DNA of 64,000 bases from the sequence record MW373745.1; one strand, given 5' to 3'. The notes beneath the pieces are model-generated. The model worked only from the letters and a program-made list of their open reading frames with translations. It had not been told where the DNA came from and made no database searches. Of this stretch, positions 1,600 to 9,595 are shown piece by piece; within the stretch, counting starts at the first letter, position 1, and each line of letters opens with the position of its first letter. The position numbers were made by a program, and so were the translations under genes.

Positions 1600-2955
1600 A
1601 TGCCTTTAAGTGTAAATGAATTTATTAAGAAACCAAAATATTTTAAACCTTTTCTTAAGAAATTAGAAACAAATGATTTTTTATTAGAAGGTGATCTTGG
1701 TGTTTTTAGTTTTGATTTAAAAGATCCTACAAATATTAGATTATTTGAATTAATTAAAAGTATGAATGTCGATGCTGTAGAACTTTTGATATATGACAAA
1801 GATACTAAAAAATATAAAAACTTTAAAGGTTCTATTAATGGAAAGAAAGGTGAAGCACCTTTTAGTAAAATTCATAAATCTAATGTATCTGGTATCACAT
1901 TAAAAGGTCAAAAAAGTGACAACAAAGACGACTTAGCAGAGTGTGGCGTTGTATACTATTTAGATATGTTTTTAAATACTAAATTAACCGATATTAAATT
2001 CTATAATGAAACTCAAGTTAAAAATACTAGGACTAAGACGCCATTAGATTCTGTTAAAACATTTTTATTTGAAAATCCAGATTGGGATAAAGCTTGTAAA
2101 GATGCATCTAAATGTATTCTAAATGAAATTATTTTAAAACAAAACCTTAGAAATTATGAATTTCACCACAAAACTGATGTTTTTAATGATCTTAAAAAGC
2201 AAGGTAAACAATTAACTAAATTAGCAGAGGATAAATGGAATCCTGGAGATTTCTTTTTGGTTAAACCTACATATAAAATCAAATCATACAAAACTTATCA
2301 AGAACTTAACAAAGAAATTAATGATTTTGATAATATAATACCTATAAGTCTTAAGAAATCTGCTAAAGAAGCTTTAGGTGGTTCCTATGCTTTGAATAAT
2401 TTATCAGGTAATTATGGTTTACCAAATTTTAAAAGTATTAAATATAAATCATTCGATAATAATTTTTTTAATTTTTTTAAAGAATGTATGGTTGAATTAA
2501 AGAAGCATAAAAATTCAGATATCATTAGAGTTAGAACTAATAACATTAACTTAGCTGACATTTATGATGAAATTGCCAGCAATGCTAAAGCTGCTAATTT
2601 TTTCGAAGGGTTTCCACCGAGTTTAGCATTTATATCTATGAGTTCAAAATATTTTAATGATATTATATTTGAAGTTGTTTGTAATTGTTTAAGTAGATCT
2701 CTATTAAGTTCTAATTTTTATAAAGTTTCAGGAAATCATTTAGAAGTATTTGATACATTGCCTTCAGATTTAAAAATCGAATACTGTGTTGTCTCCTGTG
2801 ATGGTAATGCTGATATCAAATGGAATATTAAAATAGACGGTAAATTATGGAAATTGCAATTAAGATCTAAAGGTTCTTTACCACAATTTATGTTGGTACC
2901 TCAACCGGTAAGTGCTTCAAGTCAAGACAAAAAAATTCAAGCTATTAATGTTTAA
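1600..2955 (+). CDS. Hypothetical protein, possible PD-(D/E)xK nuclease fold
   Basis: DKWNPGDFFL...IIPISLKK motif pair. Confidence 0.4.
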   Translation: MPLSVNEFIKKPKYFKPFLKKLETNDFLLEGDLGVFSFDLKDPTNIRLFELIKSMNVDAVELLIYDKDTKKYKNFKGSINGKKGEAPFSKIHKSNVSGITLKGQKSDNKDDLAECGVVYYLDMFLNTKLTDIKFYNETQVKNTRTKTPLDSVKTFLFENPDWDKACKDASKCILNEIILKQNLRNYEFHHKTDVFNDLKKQGKQLTKLAEDKWNPGDFFLVKPTYKIKSYKTYQELNKEINDFDNIIPISLKKSAKEALGGSYALNNLSGNYGLPNFKSIKYKSFDNNFFNFFKECMVELKKHKNSDIIRVRTNNINLADIYDEIASNAKAANFFEGFPPSLAFISMSSKYFNDIIFEVVCNCLSRSLLSSNFYKVSGNHLEVFDTLPSDLKIEYCVVSCDGNADIKWNIKIDGKLWKLQLRSKGSLPQFMLVPQPVSASSQDKKIQAINV

Positions 2956-3032
2956 AAATCTACACTCGAGTGTTAGATCTAGCACTATATTTAGTATCCA
3001 AATAAGTGAATAAATACATAAAAAGGATCATA

Positions 3033-3545
3033 ATGGCAAAATTAATCTTACAAAGAATACAAGAATGTACCAATGTTAGAAAACTAAGTAAAGAAAAAAT
3101 CGAAGGATCTACATTATCTGATTTAATATTATATGATGACAATGGTCAAATTCTTTGGAAAGGTGCTGCTTGTGAAAATGCCGGACCAAGCACAGAAGAA
3201 TCAGGAACTGATAAACGTATAACAGCAGGTTCTTATAAATTAGAATGGTGTGCTAGTTCTAAAAATGTTGGATTAGCTAAAAAATACCCACAATGGTATA
3301 ATAAAGATCGATCAACCATAGCAATTTGGGTTAAAAGACCAAACGATGCTAATTTTAACAATAGATTAATCAGAATACATATTGGAAATTACCCACAAGA
3401 TACAGAAGGTTGTATTTTACCTGGTAAAACCAGAGGTGCTGGCATTGTTTCTAGTTCAGCAGATGCTTGCAACGAACTCTATACTAAAATAAAAGAAATT
3501 GGAATTAAAACTGTAGATTTTATTATTAAAGAAATTGAAGCTTAA
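3033..3545 (+). CDS. DUF5675 / L,D-peptidase-like protein, candidate cell-wall hydrolase
   Basis: ITAGSYKL...IRIHIGNYPQDTEGCILPG; ATG at 3033 follows AAGGA, preferred over the GTG at 3006. Confidence 0.6.
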   Translation: MAKLILQRIQECTNVRKLSKEKIEGSTLSDLILYDDNGQILWKGAACENAGPSTEESGTDKRITAGSYKLEWCASSKNVGLAKKYPQWYNKDRSTIAIWVKRPNDANFNNRLIRIHIGNYPQDTEGCILPGKTRGAGIVSSSADACNELYTKIKEIGIKTVDFIIKEIEA

Positions 3546-3553
3546 GGATTAAA

Positions 3554-3895
3554 ATGAGGGGGTTAGTTTATAAATCACCACTTAAAGTTGATTTAGATTT
3601 AGCAGAATCTTATAAAGGTAATATATTCTTATATAACGAACCAATAAAAAATGATCCAGAATATAGCATACAAGATTCTATTAATTTGGTATCTAAACCA
3701 GATCCCGCAACTTTTAGTGAATCAATATCTTTAGATGATACTAACCACTTCAATATTGATTTCAATTTTAACGAAACAGCGATATTAAGAGAATCTGTCT
3801 TTGATATAACTTCTGAGACTATTGATTCTGATTTTAGTAGAGATCCAGAGCCTGTAGATCCTGGATTTAACTCTGATTCAAAACCAAGTGTATAA
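3554..3895 (+). CDS. Hypothetical acidic protein
   Basis: ORF with AAGGA RBS, within a late operon. Confidence 0.5.
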   Translation: MRGLVYKSPLKVDLDLAESYKGNIFLYNEPIKNDPEYSIQDSINLVSKPDPATFSESISLDDTNHFNIDFNFNETAILRESVFDITSETIDSDFSRDPEPVDPGFNSDSKPSV

Positions 3896-3923
3896 ATAAA
3901 TACAAAAAAAACAAGGATTTTAA

Positions 3924-4670
3924 ATGTCAGATAAGTTAAAATTACTTTATGAATATCACGATGCTAATGTACTTATCGAAGAATCAGTTAACGACAAAAA
4001 AGAAAAAGTTAAAAAATATAAAATTGCTGGTATTTTTTCAACAATAGGTGAAAAAAACCGTAACGGTAGAATTTACCCAAAAGAACTCTGGGAAAGTAAT
4101 GTTAAAAAATACCAAGACGTTATAAAAAGCGGTTCTATTAATAGACTTTGTGAGTGGGAACATCCTGAAAGAGGTACAGTTGATCCTATGGAAGCAGTTG
4201 CTGCCATCAATAAACTTGAAATCAACGGCAAGTATGTTATGGGTGAAGCTACATTGTTAGATAATCCAAGAGCTAACCAATTAAAATCCTTAATAGATAA
4301 TGGTATTAAATTGTCTGTATCTAGTAGAGGTTCTGGCAGAGTTAAAAATGGTATTGTCGAATCATTTGATTTAATTACATATGATTTAGTATCTGCACCA
4401 AGCGATTATAATGCTACTATGGAAGGAACATCTATATATGAATCACAAAAAGAATTTGTAATGGTGGATGGTAAATTAGTAGAATCTAAAGATTCTGACA
4501 GTGCTAAAGATTCTGACAGCGATAGCAAAGCTGATACTAAAGATTCGAAAGATTCTGATTCAAACGATTCTAAAGATAATACTGAAGATTCGAAACTAAA
4601 AGAATCTATTCTTAAAGAACATTTCTTAGAGTTTATTGAAATACTTAAGAACAAAAATAAAAACAAATAA
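3924..4670 (+). CDS. Prohead core protease (gp21) with acidic D/S/K tail
   Basis: KNRNGRIYP, EWEHP, VSSRGSG and DLVSAPS motifs. Confidence 0.92.
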   Translation: MSDKLKLLYEYHDANVLIEESVNDKKEKVKKYKIAGIFSTIGEKNRNGRIYPKELWESNVKKYQDVIKSGSINRLCEWEHPERGTVDPMEAVAAINKLEINGKYVMGEATLLDNPRANQLKSLIDNGIKLSVSSRGSGRVKNGIVESFDLITYDLVSAPSDYNATMEGTSIYESQKEFVMVDGKLVESKDSDSAKDSDSDSKADTKDSKDSDSNDSKDNTEDSKLKESILKEHFLEFIEILKNKNKNK

Positions 4671-4897: not shown

Positions 4898-5040
4898 ACA
4901 TTTAAAATCCAAATTTTACTCGAGAGCTAACATTTTAAAATACTAAAATATTAGCTCTTCAGCTTCAAATTTCAAACCATAATCAGTTAATTTTAATATA
5001 TAATATAATATAATAAAACAAAATCATAAAAAGATTTATA

Positions 5041-5544
5041 ATGTTAAGCAAAGAAGAAATAAAATATTTTCAAACACATAAAAATGAAATAACAGACGAA
5101 CTCTTAGAAACAATTAGAGCTCAAGGAAAACTAGGAAAAGCACAAGCCTTAGAAATCTTAGATTTACCTAAAGACTCTGATAACTATTACTTAGATGCGT
5201 ATAATACGAGAATTAGTTATAATGGGTCTCGTGGTCTTAAAAAAGCTTACACAAAATTAAACTTAAGTCCGATACATATCAGCGAGCTTGAAAAATGTGC
5301 GAATGATCCACTTTATTTCTTAAGAAATTATGTGCGAATGACTACACCAAAAGGTTTTGATTTCGTAGATTCTAGGCCATACCAGGATGAATTTATACAA
5401 TTGCTGAGCGACGATTCTATCGAAAACGTGATATCAATGCAGCCTCGTCAATGCATTGAAGCAAATACTAAAATAAATGTAAATGGTAATGAAACTACTA
5501 TTATTGAATTATTTGAGGAGTGTAAGCGTGGTAGTGAATCGTAA
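5041..5544 (+). CDS. terL: Terminase large subunit N-terminal fragment fused to 30-aa split-intein IntN
   Basis: ELEKCANDPLYF...RPYQ...QPRQ followed by CIEANTKINV (intein block A, Cys1 at 5452). Confidence 0.9.
   Translation: MLSKEEIKYFQTHKNEITDELLETIRAQGKLGKAQALEILDLPKDSDNYYLDAYNTRISYNGSRGLKKAYTKLNLSPIHISELEKCANDPLYFLRNYVRMTTPKGFDFVDSRPYQDEFIQLLSDDSIENVISMQPRQCIEANTKINVNGNETTIIELFEECKRGSES
5452..5541 (+). other. Split intein N-fragment (IntN, 30 aa)
   Basis: Starts with Cys right after the half Walker A PRQ; ORF stops 30 codons later. Confidence 0.85.
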
Positions 5545-6679
5545 AAAATTTAATTGCACCTATGTTTGTAAAATAGAACGCGCTTATATAATAAATTATA
5601 CAGGTACTATACTCAAACATAATACACAATCAATTTTAATTCCATACGAAGATTTAAGTAAGTTACAAACAAAAATAAACACTAAAGTAACTCCAGAAAA
5701 TATATTAAAATCTCTAGGGCTTAGTGGTGTGAAATTAACACGGAATCAACAAAATAACTTAATGGAGATATACCACACAAGACGTATAAATCGCGAATTT
5801 TTACCTATTAATTTATTAAAAATTTTAATGACTCGTGATGTCACGAACATATTAAAAAGAATAAGACTTTTAAACAACATAAATGGTAGTGGTACGCTTG
5901 CATATTTAATATTACAATTTGGTTTGACTGAAGGTATTTACCGTTATAATAACTCGTTGTTTAAGGTTAATAACCCTGGGTTTAATCACCAAGGTTTGTA
6001 TTCAGCAAATTCTAAGAATTTTATTAAGTATAAGGGATTAACTGAAACTGAAATTGAAAATAAAATTAATGATGTACGTGTGAAATCTCACCAAACGAAA
6101 CAAAAACACCCCGAAAATGAAAATGCGCGTTATGAATATTATGTCAAATTATATGGGGATAATGATATAGCAAAACAAAAGTATTACGAACGCTGTAACA
6201 CAAGGTCTTTAAATATGTTTATATATAGATATGGCGTTGAAGAAGGTACTAAAAGGTTTAATAACACAGTTCAAAAATGGTTAACAACCCTAAATAATAA
6301 GTCTACAGAAGAAAAGATTAGAATAAACAGAGCCAAAGCTTCTAATATTGATTCTAAATATAAACCAGGTGGTGAACTACATAATACTAAGGGCTTATGT
6401 TATTATGTCAAATTTTTTGATAATAATATTACATTTTATAAAATAGGTATTACTAAAAGATCTGTAGATGGTAGATTTGGTAAGTTTTTTATTAAAGGTA
6501 TGCAATATATAATTATAGACATATACGAAGATTTAATATATGAATGCTTTAAAAAAGAACAAAATATTTTAAAATCATTTGATAGCAATAGAATTAATAT
6601 AATAAGAAATAACAGATTATTTACTACCGAAGCGTTCGATATAGATGTATTGAAAGGTGATAAAATTGAAAATTATTGA
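5528..6679 (+). CDS. Free-standing homing endonuclease, GIY-YIG/T5orf172-like, between the terL halves
   Basis: C-terminal CYYVKF...YKIGIT...RF...KKEQNIL; repeated (Y/F)GxxEGxxR(Y/F) motifs; GTG at 5528 with GAGGAG at 5515-5520 (ORF track start 5483). Confidence 0.7.
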   Translation: MVVNRKKFNCTYVCKIERAYIINYTGTILKHNTQSILIPYEDLSKLQTKINTKVTPENILKSLGLSGVKLTRNQQNNLMEIYHTRRINREFLPINLLKILMTRDVTNILKRIRLLNNINGSGTLAYLILQFGLTEGIYRYNNSLFKVNNPGFNHQGLYSANSKNFIKYKGLTETEIENKINDVRVKSHQTKQKHPENENARYEYYVKLYGDNDIAKQKYYERCNTRSLNMFIYRYGVEEGTKRFNNTVQKWLTTLNNKSTEEKIRINRAKASNIDSKYKPGGELHNTKGLCYYVKFFDNNITFYKIGITKRSVDGRFGKFFIKGMQYIIIDIYEDLIYECFKKEQNILKSFDSNRINIIRNNRLFTTEAFDIDVLKGDKIENY

Positions 6680-6998
6680 AAGTTATGAATGTAAAGACAA
6701 ATATGTAGAAACGCCTATAGGTAAAGTCAAAATTCTCGAAGTCCATAAAACTATTAAATACAATATTTTTGAGATAGAAACCGAAAATGGATTCAAGTTA
6801 CAAGCATCTGAATTACACGTATTAATAGACGAAAATGATAACGAATTATATGTTAGAGATTGTTTAAATAAGGTAATTAAAACAAAATCAGGACCTTCTA
6901 AAATAATATCTAAAACATTTATAAAATATGATCATTGTTATGATTTAACTTTAGAGCATTATCACCTTTATTACACCAATGGTGTTTTAAGTCATAAT
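6657..6998 (+). other. Split intein C-fragment (IntC, about 114 aa)
   Basis: Block B-like ASELH; block F/G YDLT...SHN; +1 residue Ser at 6999. Confidence 0.85.
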
Positions 6999-8387
6999 TC
7001 ATCTAAATCAACTACAACAAGTGTAAAACTTGCGCATTTATACTGTTTTAAGAAAGATATCAACATAGGCATAGTTGCTTACAGTGGTAACTCGGCACGA
7101 GAGTTCTTAGACAAAACAAAGAAAATGTTGATAGGCTTACCAATATGGATGCAGCCCGGAACAGTTACTTGGAATAAAGGTTCAATAGAATGTGAAAATA
7201 ATATAAAGATTTTAACGGACGTACCAAGTTCGGACGCATTCCGTGGAACGTCCACAAATATAATCGTTGTAGATGAATGTGCATATTTAGATCCTGCGGG
7301 CTGGATAGATTTCACTGACGGTGTTTTACCATCACAAGCCGGCTTAGCTTTCAAAAAATTAGTCATTTTATCTACACCTAAAGGTAAGAATCATTTTTAC
7401 GATATTTGGCAGGGTGCTGGTGACACTTTAGAAACTTCTATTAATGGATTTGTAAGACATAGGGTAGATTGGAGATTAGTACCAAGGTTTAAATCTGACG
7501 GTACTAAGTATGATCCTGAAGAATTCAAGCAACAACAAATTAAAACCGGTGGTTTAGTTGTTTGGAATTCTGCATACGAATGCAAATTTGAAGGTTCTGC
7601 GATGACATTGATACCTAGTGAAATATTAGATACTTATAAACCACAAGAACCAATAGAAGTTGATAATATTAAGGATTCTAAAATACTAATATACGAAGAA
7701 CCAATACCCGGACATAAATACGTTATGGGTGTTGATACTGCTAAAGAAGGTGCTGATTTTACAGGAGTCCAAATATTTGATACTACAGATTTAAATTTCA
7801 GACAAGTAGCATCAGCAAAACTTAAAATAGATTATATGTTATTACCAGAGTTACTCAATGAGTATGGTTTAAGGTTCAATCAAGCTTTAATAATTGTAGA
7901 AAATAATGAAGGCTCTGGTCAAGTGGTTGCTGATATTCTCAAAAGAGATTATGAATATGAAAACTTATATTATGACGTCAATAAACAAAAACAAAGATTA
8001 AAATATCCTGGGTTCAGAACTACAAAATTATCAAGGGATGTTATTTTACAAACTGTATCAACGTTAGCACAAGCTAATAAATTATTATTAGTGGACAAAG
8101 AAACTATTAAGGAGTTTGGGGTATTTACATTAAATGATAATGGTAAGTACCAAGCAGCTGTGGGATATCACGATGATTTAGTAATGTCTTGTTGTTTATG
8201 TTTTGGTATTTTTACAAATGTTAAGAACTTTGAAGATATGAAAGAAATTGTAGATTCTTTAAAAAGTTCCGAAGGAAAAAGTTTTGAGTATCTAACATTT
8301 GGAGCTTTTGCAGATGGTCTAGGTACAGAGCCAGATTCTAATACTGATAATAAGGATTTGAATCTCAGTAATTTGGAATATTATTAA
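6657..8387 (+). CDS. terL: Split-intein IntC fused to the terminase large subunit C-terminal part (ATPase + nuclease)
   Basis: YDLTL...YYTNGVLSHN|S, then SKSTT completing Walker A; IIVVDE Walker B; GVDTA and HDDLV nuclease motifs. Confidence 0.92.
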   Translation: MIKLKIIESYECKDKYVETPIGKVKILEVHKTIKYNIFEIETENGFKLQASELHVLIDENDNELYVRDCLNKVIKTKSGPSKIISKTFIKYDHCYDLTLEHYHLYYTNGVLSHNSSKSTTTSVKLAHLYCFKKDINIGIVAYSGNSAREFLDKTKKMLIGLPIWMQPGTVTWNKGSIECENNIKILTDVPSSDAFRGTSTNIIVVDECAYLDPAGWIDFTDGVLPSQAGLAFKKLVILSTPKGKNHFYDIWQGAGDTLETSINGFVRHRVDWRLVPRFKSDGTKYDPEEFKQQQIKTGGLVVWNSAYECKFEGSAMTLIPSEILDTYKPQEPIEVDNIKDSKILIYEEPIPGHKYVMGVDTAKEGADFTGVQIFDTTDLNFRQVASAKLKIDYMLLPELLNEYGLRFNQALIIVENNEGSGQVVADILKRDYEYENLYYDVNKQKQRLKYPGFRTTKLSRDVILQTVSTLAQANKLLLVDKETIKEFGVFTLNDNGKYQAAVGYHDDLVMSCCLCFGIFTNVKNFEDMKEIVDSLKSSEGKSFEYLTFGAFADGLGTEPDSNTDNKDLNLSNLEYY

Positions 8388-9163: not shown

Positions 9164-9595
9164 TTACTTTGTATGGTTTTTATCTAATCTACTCTTAATA
9201 CTTTCATTGATTTCAACAGTTATTTCAGATTTTAAGTCATTCTTGACTTCTGACTTAACTTCAGATTTTACATCATCCTTAATATCATCCTTAATATCAT
9301 TCTTAATATTTTCAGCAAGTTTAGCTAAATCTTTATTTTTTTGTTTTTCTTTGAGCTGATCAATAATAACTTCTGGTTTTTTAGAACAACCAATTAAACT
9401 ACCATTAAGATCTTGTTGTGGTGTTACATAATTTCCCGTCGATAAGTATAAAACACCGTCTACACAAACTTGATTAATTCTGGAATCCGAAGTTCCACGA
9501 ACTTCTTTGCCTGTTTTATCGCTGGAATAATCAGATCCACACCCTATTATAAACAAAGCTAACAAAGCTATAACGAAACATTTTAGATTCTTCAT
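9164..9595 (-). CDS. Lipoprotein with KDDI/KSEV repeat tail
   Basis: Signal peptide plus lipobox IIG-C; 12-bp repeats. Confidence 0.65.
   Translation of the reverse strand: MKNLKCFVIALLALFIIGCGSDYSSDKTGKEVRGTSDSRINQVCVDGVLYLSTGNYVTPQQDLNGSLIGCSKKPEVIIDQLKEKQKNKDLAKLAENIKNDIKDDIKDDVKSEVKSEVKNDLKSEITVEINESIKSRLDKNHTK

Follow-up and report, generated by a model that had tools for sequence, protein, structure and literature searches.

How a phage makes a working large terminase subunit (TerL) from a gene that lies in two pieces is the question raised by the terL locus at positions 5041-8387 of the stretch of DNA analysed here (the window, 64,000 nucleotides of record MW373745.1). The window comes from Campylobacter phage CJLB-13 (MW373745; same coordinates, 100% identity over the 4.6 kb compared), and is likewise 100% identical over the 4.6 kb compared to phage F379 (MT932329, Firehammervirus), which was isolated on C. 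jejuni RM1221. F379 belongs to a working phage collection and is a propagated phage (PMC7692668, PMC8713573); given that it was isolated and propagated, a working TerL must be made. Our answer is that terL is very probably a “fractured gene,” in which a mini-intein in the Walker A motif has been split by a free-standing endonuclease gene, and that TerL is made by trans-splicing. The anatomy of the locus, its homologies, its conservation and the selection acting on it are established here, as are a Hint-fold model of the C-terminal intein piece and a T5orf172/GIY-YIG-type match for the endonuclease. Arrangements of this kind have been described before, and the present locus adds a new and well-supported case, found in a cultured phage.

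Three overlapping open reading frames (ORFs), a different frame each, occupy 5041-8387 of the plus strand. Two of them are terL: 5041-5544 (167 aa) encodes the N-terminal part of TerL and the N-terminal intein piece (IntN), and 6666-8387 (573 aa) encodes the C-terminal intein piece (IntC) and the remainder of TerL. The gap of about 1.12 kb between the two is filled by a complete endonuclease gene at 5528-6679. The features of the locus, with the evidence for each in brackets, are as follows.

5041-5451, plus strand: TerL N-extein, 137 aa, ending in QPRQ, the first half of the Walker A P-loop (PHROG terminase large subunit, E 1.7e-45; collinear with the TerL of phage CC_R7 and with T4 gp17).
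5452-5544, plus strand: IntN, 30 residues from Cys1 (5452-5541) and the stop codon TAA (5542-5544) (sequence; alignment with unbroken alleles).
5515-6672, plus strand: endonuclease cassette, 1158 nt (DNA alignment with phages CP220 and WX1).
5515-5520, plus strand: Shine-Dalgarno-like GAGGAG, 7 nt 5' of the endonuclease start (sequence; a ribosome-binding site is annotated in F379).
5528-6679, plus strand: free-standing homing endonuclease gene, 383 aa, GTG start (start placed by homology to M-V-x-N-R in relatives).
6653-6658, plus strand: Shine-Dalgarno-like AAGGTG, 7 nt 5' of the IntC start (purine-rich equivalent in five of five lineages; annotated in F379).
6666-6998, plus strand: IntC, 111 aa, conserved TTG start, ending in His-Asn, with blocks B (S-E-L-H), F (Asp) and G (lineage alignment, profile matches, model).
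6999-8387, plus strand: TerL C-extein, 462 aa and stop, from Ser+1 of SSKSTT, with Walker B (IIVVDE) and the nuclease domain (Pfam Terminase_6N, E 8.3e-11; PHROG terminase families).

Start codons were assigned by homology to relatives, GTG at 5528 for the endonuclease and TTG at 6666 for IntC; the F379 annotation has 5534 and 6666. The third ORF is open from stop to stop over 6654-8387 and offers two candidate starts, GTG at 6657 and TTG at 6666, of which the TTG is the more likely. The endonuclease ORF overlaps that of IntN by 17 nt and that of IntC by 14 nt. In F379 the two terL halves are both annotated as “putative large terminase” and are the only terminase annotations under the match, while the ORF between them is a “putative intron-associated endonuclease.” No second copy of the endonuclease, no further intein and no second terL-like ORF were found in the window.

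A preliminary description of this DNA, made from the sequence alone, had the N-part end in QPRQ-CIEANT, with some 30 residues before a stop, and the C-part follow in another frame about 1.1 kb downstream, reading YYTNGVLSHN-SSKSTT. Both readings are confirmed: the Cys1 codon lies at 5452-5454 and the TAA at 5542-5544, the His-Asn codons are at 6993-6998, and SSKSTT begins at 6999. That description also proposed that joining the halves would restore a Walker A motif, QPRQSSKSTT, and this is borne out both by an intein-free relative and by alignment with gp17. Phage CC_R7 (PQ092953), whose DNA is about 91% identical, encodes an uninterrupted TerL of 599 aa which at this point reads SMQPRQSSKSTTTSV, the junction QPRQSSKSTT being continuous; because the intein-free gene reads straight through, the junction in the window is not a chance resemblance. 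The 137-aa N-extein and the 462-aa C-extein add up to 599 aa, the length of the CC_R7 protein. When CC_R7 TerL is aligned with T4 gp17 (PDB 3ezk; E 2e-65), the junction stretch falls over SRQLGKTT, the Walker A motif of gp17, so that by alignment of this orthologue the intein insertion point, RQ/SSKS, is equivalent to RQ/LGKT in T4. Absent from the earlier account were the endonuclease gene, the unbroken and intein-free relatives, and the remoteness of the intein from the Cat consensus.

The two nucleophiles, Cys1 of the intein and Ser+1 (6999-7001) just beyond its end, are invariant among the split alleles. IntC holds S-E-L-H in block B, C-Y-D-L-T-L in block F and N-G-x-L-S-H-N in block G; an alignment of four lineages shows no variation in the block B His, the block F Asp, the terminal His-Asn or Ser+1, whereas the block B Ser is replaced by Ala in one of the four (L009). 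The blocks of IntC align with the corresponding blocks of the gp41-1, VidaL and CatC inteins. Sequence searches of the PDB with IntC alone, or with the unbroken intein of CP220, gave marginal matches only, and a four-sequence IntC profile was needed to recover gp41-1 (E 0.0012), VidaL (E 0.0024) and CatC (E 0.06). The AlphaFold model of IntC is all-beta, with a mean predicted local distance difference test score (pLDDT) of 72.7, and its best 39 matches in the PDB are inteins or intein-like (Hint) domains, among them the atypically split Cat (6dsl) and VidaL (6vgv); its template-modelling (TM) score to PDB inteins is about 0.45-0.5, as expected for a domain without its first 30 residues. IntC is accordingly modelled, at this confidence, with the horseshoe-shaped beta fold of Hint domains. 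IntN has a net charge of -3, and its last 9 residues (EECKRGSES) are encoded within the cassette; its tail motif, F-E-(E/V)-(C/I)-K, is common to all split alleles and is not found in unbroken ones. IntN ends just past I-I-E-L-F-E-E-C-K, the usual helix-1 pattern, and residue 15 of CatC aligns with residue 10 of IntC.

The origin of the break can be followed in sister phages. In CP220, CPt10/CP20, CP21, WX1 and IBB_35 the same intein is continuous, a mini-intein of 145-147 aa within a single terL ORF, and a loop of 16 aa stands where the window has the cassette. The loop, (I/V/N)-(N/S)-QESNKRLYFNSSKF, is encoded by a stretch of 46-48 nt (INQESNKRLYFNSSKF), in place of which the window has 1158 nt. 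Compared with the unbroken allele of CP21, the flanks of the cassette are identical at 62 of 63 nt in the IntN core and at 324 of 324 nt in the IntC core; cassette and loop have therefore been exchanged very recently, as a discrete module. The identity of the IntC flank also suggests that the cultured Firehammervirus phages hold an active cycle of three states (no intein, intein alone, intein with endonuclease), and if this is true one could follow the cassette as it homes into an intein or disappears from one. As for the loop being a remnant of a cassette, the best local alignment at the DNA level scored 14 against a shuffle mean of 14.7, and comparison of the loop with endonuclease N-termini and IntN tails at the protein level gave no similarity beyond that of shuffles.

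Two further relatives were treated as unreliable assemblies and left out of all conclusions. The “complete genome” records of CJLB-12 and CJLB-14 are 157-160 kb long, against 175-183 kb for their relatives, and have a frame-broken terL: in CJLB-12 (L005, about 540-580) a 9-nt stub replaces the loop or cassette, and CJLB-14 (L008, about 480-560) jumps from QPRQSSKS to mid-intein sequence. Both give the impression that mixed alleles were collapsed, or joined into a chimera, during assembly.

Searching with the endonuclease ORF revealed the split layout in four further lineages of metagenome contigs (L009/L010, L011-L014, L015/L016 and L017/L018), which stem from at least seven independent sequencing runs, and the order of short N-part, endonuclease and long C-part is kept in every split locus found. 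The endonuclease is 92% identical to that of the window in L017/L018 and about 50% identical in the other three lineages. Since the layout occurs in two GenBank isolates (F379 and CJLB-13) as well as in independent runs, it is not a sequencing artefact; the preliminary description had named one continuous frame as a finding that would overturn it, and what the two isolates show instead is an identical layout, repeated in contigs of independent runs.

IntC is exactly 111 aa long in all split lineages, and its identity to the window (62-71%) tracks that of the exteins (63-70%), the endonuclease being more diverged. Five lineages share the TTG start of the C-part, which follows a purine-rich ribosome-binding site by 6-8 nt and opens the sequence (M)KIIE(S/T)Y; the endonuclease in each of them starts with M-V-x-N-R and is served by a separate ribosome-binding site within the IntN tail. 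Ratios of nonsynonymous to synonymous divergence (dN/dS) were calculated by the Nei-Gojobori method for two pairs, the window versus L017 and L011 versus L015, and came to 0.06 and 0.04 for IntC, 0.09 and 0.10 for the endonuclease, and 0.02 and 0.05 for the C-extein. Synonymous divergence is about 1 or more for L011 versus L015. With dN/dS this low and synonymous divergence this high, intein and endonuclease have therefore been kept as working proteins over long periods.

The endonuclease consists of a helical part, making up the N-terminal three quarters, and a C-terminal nuclease domain at about residues 265-383, of the T5orf172/GIY-YIG type. Its model is confident (pLDDT 70-91) at about residues 285-383. 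Compared with AlphaFold clusters, the C-terminal domain matched T5orf172, GIY-YIG nuclease and MUG113 (E 2e-6 to 1e-3); compared with PDB folds, the whole model, three quarters of which is of low confidence, had no significant match. The invariant residues Y292/Y293, Y304-K-I-G307, R316 and E368 would fit the GIY-YIG catalytic pattern (Tyr...Tyr-x-Gly, Arg, Glu). The family is tiny: four clusters only among 5.8 billion proteins, all within terL. A scan of IMG/VR with the endonuclease alignment yielded no relatives, and no PHROG family was matched. Vibrio phage vB_VmeM-32 and Caulobacter phage Cr30 have proteins weakly related to the central helical part; in Cr30 (L019, 2707-3729) a hypothetical protein of 340 aa, 33% identical to residues 144-277 of the endonuclease, is encoded between terS and terL. 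A relative of the presumed DNA-binding part thus adjoins terL in Cr30, a T4-like phage, outside any intein.

From these data we infer how the locus is transcribed and spliced, and what the endonuclease does and where. A T5orf172/GIY-YIG endonuclease gene would have split the mini-intein after its first helix, at the “S2” atypical split site. The three overlapping ORFs would lie on one transcript and their translation would be coupled but separate, because no terminator-like sites were found between them and their ends overlap as described; promoter-like sites occurred at chance level only. The predicted products are TerL-N with IntN (167 aa), the endonuclease (383 aa), and IntC with TerL-C (573 aa), the last begun at the TTG and served by a separate ribosome-binding site. 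The 30-residue IntN would then dock on the 111-residue IntC to complete the Hint fold, and class-1 trans-splicing would follow, by way of a Cys1 thioester, attack by Ser+1 and Asn cyclisation, joining QPRQ to SSKSTT to give a TerL of 599 residues with an intact P-loop. DNA packaging would depend on this reaction, because the unspliced ATPase could not bind nucleotide. The endonuclease would serve its own spread only, cutting intein alleles that lack it (those of the CP21/CP220 type), whereupon repair would copy the cassette in.

Several results weigh against this account. The similarity to CatC is marginal (about 23% identity at E 0.06), a weak kinship to the characterised atypical TerL inteins, and the 30-aa IntN on its own gave chance matches only among PDB sequences. 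The position of the split, after helix 1, is deduced from a sequence pattern and from where the CatC alignment starts. For the endonuclease, the Pfam T5orf172 match in the last 80 residues scores 18 bits, below the curated cut-off of 20 (best relative, E 3.4e-4), and most of the model, its N-terminal three quarters, is of low confidence. IntN, finally, is fast-evolving, with a dN/dS of up to 0.8 in one pair, a value from few sites that partly overlap the endonuclease ORF.

Three other explanations of the locus have to be set against trans-splicing. The insert might be an intron of group I (or II) that splices itself and includes an endonuclease ORF, such that RNA splicing restores the frame and the intein then acts in cis; group I introns occur in T4-like phages, the frame would be kept if 5515-6671 were removed, and the F379 annotation speaks of an intron-associated endonuclease. 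An intron plus an intein has moreover been described in terL of the sister phage IBB_35 (PMC3322345). Against this, no intron family of Rfam 15 was detected in 5300-6900 even at a permissive E of up to 10, and the endonuclease ORF takes up 1145 of the 1158 nt of the cassette (5528-6672), so that a ribozyme core would find no non-coding space; five lineages, at saturated synonymous divergence, have retained the stop of IntN and the TTG start with its ribosome-binding site, signals that would be pointless within an intron. We therefore grant an intron only a very slim chance. The frame-broken genes of CJLB-12 and CJLB-14, which resemble assembly problems, might raise the suspicion that the terL of this record is no more than a pseudogene or the product of a faulty assembly, a working terminase being supplied from elsewhere. 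Yet two independent isolates have the same layout, as do contigs from at least seven independent runs; purifying selection acts on each of the three ORFs, and the window has no second terL-like ORF, so that the probability of a broken gene is close to nil.

The remaining alternative grants that the proteins are made and denies only the peptide bond: the TerL fragments could be held together non-covalently by the intein halves, or could form a two-piece enzyme like the NrdA of phage Aeh1, a gene split by an endonuclease insertion without splicing, as cited in a passage of PMC2677866. The break in terL, however, interrupts the P-loop at its centre, and 141 intein residues separate the two sides; such an unspliced complex could hardly bind ATP. 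Residues that serve splicing only (Cys1, the block B His, the block F Asp, His-Asn and Ser+1) are invariant although IntC identity has fallen to 62-71%, and purifying selection on IntC is strong. A two-piece terminase is thus quite improbable, and trans-splicing of a fractured terL remains the explanation we favour.

“Fractured genes” were defined by Dassa et al. (2009; PMC2677866), who described GIY-YIG and Vsr-like endonucleases between the halves and found GIY-YIG genes at half of the fractured loci. In the window the two ORFs of the host gene have kept their order and orientation, each bears an intein half, their stop and start signals are separate, and an endonuclease ORF lies between them. 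The list of Dassa et al. includes a gp17-like terminase from Lake Gatun (the “Terminase” locus), with an intein “fractured at an unusual point” and a C-part of 122 residues lacking only motif N1 (PMC2677866). Passages in two later sources (PMC13014065, PMC11766414) indicate that this locus became GOS-TerL (37/115 aa, Ser1/Cys+1), give AceL-TerL as 25/104 aa with Cys1/Cys+1 and the consensus intein Cat as 30/104 aa, and place the split in all three after helix alpha-1, at the S2 site. Atypical split inteins as a class have an IntN of about 15-37 aa and an IntC of more than 100 aa (PMC13014065, PMC11766414).

The preliminary description had assigned the window intein to this class on account of its short IntN and long IntC, and the assignment is supported by the sizes (30 and 111 aa), the class-1 residues and the Hint-fold model; its statement that TerL inteins are a known source of atypical split inteins agrees with the literature on AceL-TerL, GOS-TerL and the “Terminase” locus of Dassa et al. 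The alignment with known atypical TerL split inteins that it called for matched CatC, with a similar block G, at marginal similarity. Like GOS-TerL, the window intein sits in TerL and has a short IntN and a long C-part (122 or 115 aa in GOS-TerL) with all motifs but N1; GOS-TerL, however, is from ocean metagenome reads only and has Ser1/Cys+1, whereas the window intein has Cys1/Ser+1 and occurs in cultured phages whose sister phages provide unbroken and intein-free alleles. With AceL-TerL and Cat it shares a short IntN (25-30 aa in those two), an IntC of about the same length (about 104 aa) and a phage TerL as host protein; block G is alike (LYYTNG-x-x-SH-N), CatC aligns from about residue 10 of IntC to its end, and the fold match is to 6dsl. 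AceL and Cat differ from it in having Cys+1 where the window has Ser+1, and their sequences are only marginally similar to it. C. jejuni grows at 37-42 °C, and by analogy with its host's range the window intein should be active at body temperature. AceL-TerL, according to passages in the same two sources, works best at 8 °C (PMC13014065, PMC11766414).

Mycobacteriophage TerL inteins are known in the Walker A P-loop and in the Walker B motif, unbroken (Kelley et al., 2016, PMC5050341). These two sites match those of the window intein and of a further intein of CP21 (below); theirs, however, are contiguous and belong to other terminase families (TerL1, and TerL6 at the C-motif), and the classic P-loop site lies between Lys and Thr, whereas that of the window is three residues earlier (Q/SSKS). 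With nucleases of the T5orf172/GIY-YIG superfamily and the free-standing GIY-YIG homing endonucleases of T4-like phages (Seg, I-TevI) the window endonuclease appears to share, in its C-terminal domain, the fold and the pattern of Y-x(10)-YKIG, Arg and Glu; like them, it is encoded by a free-standing gene, here inserted in a gene essential to the phage and equipped with a separate ribosome-binding site. Enzymes of the I-TevI type have the nuclease domain at the N-terminus, whereas here it is C-terminal. A typically split PolB intein of Campylobacter phage CP21 has recently been mined as a tool (PMC12707363); in the literature searched, we found no paper on the terL split intein of these Campylobacter phages.

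The window intein is one of three in this TerL family, each of which has been found both unbroken and split at the same position, with three different endonucleases. The Walker A intein is unbroken in CP21 and split in the window, the one before Walker B is unbroken in L011 and split in CP21 and IBB_35, and the one at Walker B is unbroken in CP21 and split in IBB_35. A generalisation from few loci, put forward tentatively, suggests that the loop after helix 1 of phage TerL mini-inteins is a recurrent landing site for endonucleases and the natural origin of “atypical” split inteins.

The second intein, before Walker B (FRGxS/C...HN/CNIIVVDE), is likewise atypically split, with an IntN of about 35 aa and an IntC of 104 aa. 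In CP21 (L002) its IntN lies at 2056-2160, the endonuclease CP21_126 at 2132-3397 and IntC at 3394-3705; in IBB_35 (L007) it spans about 960-2560, and in the metagenome contig L011 it is unbroken. CP21_126 is a different and clear T5orf172 endonuclease (Pfam, 42 bits), with no detectable sequence relation to the endonuclease of the window, and the pieces of this intein are annotated in GenBank as separate terminase or hypothetical genes. At the same site Cys, the residue the intein needs at +1, is found in four intein-free alleles, those of CC_R7, CJLB-14, L009 and L015 (FRGY(S/T)-C-NI...), and Thr in the window (7266-7274, FRGTS-T-NIIVV); the difference may have been left behind by an intein that once occupied the site or was lost from it. 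The third is a mini-intein of 133 aa directly after the Walker B Glu (VVDE/C...SN/CAYL), unbroken in CP21 (L002, 3730-4128). In IBB_35 (L007, about 2590-4000) it is interrupted after about 29 residues by an ORF annotated MobE, which is fused in frame to IntN. MobE is an HNH-family endonuclease, and the interruption was read as an intron in the IBB_35 paper (PMC3322345).

Natural atypically split inteins with an IntN short enough to be synthesised are few (the sources consulted name AceL-TerL, GOS-TerL, VidaL and PolB16) and are prized for protein semisynthesis. The window intein, with its 30-residue IntN and Cys1/Ser+1, is a candidate ligation tool, possibly one that works at body temperature and is orthogonal to those already available. 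The phages can be grown and crossed, and with unbroken and intein-free alleles in sister phages the dynamics of intein and endonuclease become tractable; the system opens questions of how endonuclease invasion creates split inteins, of homing into intein-only alleles, and of packaging limited by trans-splicing. The annotations of the three ORFs in F379, and of CP21_125/126/127, can now be described correctly.

Other observations concern the surroundings of the locus. The 143-nt gap 5' of terL contains, after two copies of TCGAGA 41 nt apart, an inverted repeat at 4921-4959. Its 9-bp stem (GAGAGCTAA ... TTAGCTCTT) closes an A/T-rich loop some 20 nt long, and the structure could be a regulatory or processing hairpin; hairpins 5' of endonuclease genes in fractured loci were noted by Dassa et al. 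(2009; PMC2677866). Across the whole window the T4 late-promoter octamer TATAAATA is strongly under-represented: there are 8 copies, against 28 expected from shuffles, every one of which had more. One of the 8 (3891-3898) lies just 5' of the gene for the prohead protease/scaffold protein, which starts at 3924; the pattern is consistent with a motif that acts as a genuine signal and is kept out of other places. The gp21-like prohead protease/scaffold protein (ORF 3924-4670) has a repetitive C-terminal tail rich in Asp, Ser and Lys (4480-4640), with a tandem repeat of period 24 at 4527-4595. On the minus strand, a lipoprotein ORF (9164-9400) contains repeated KSEVK/DIKDD units.

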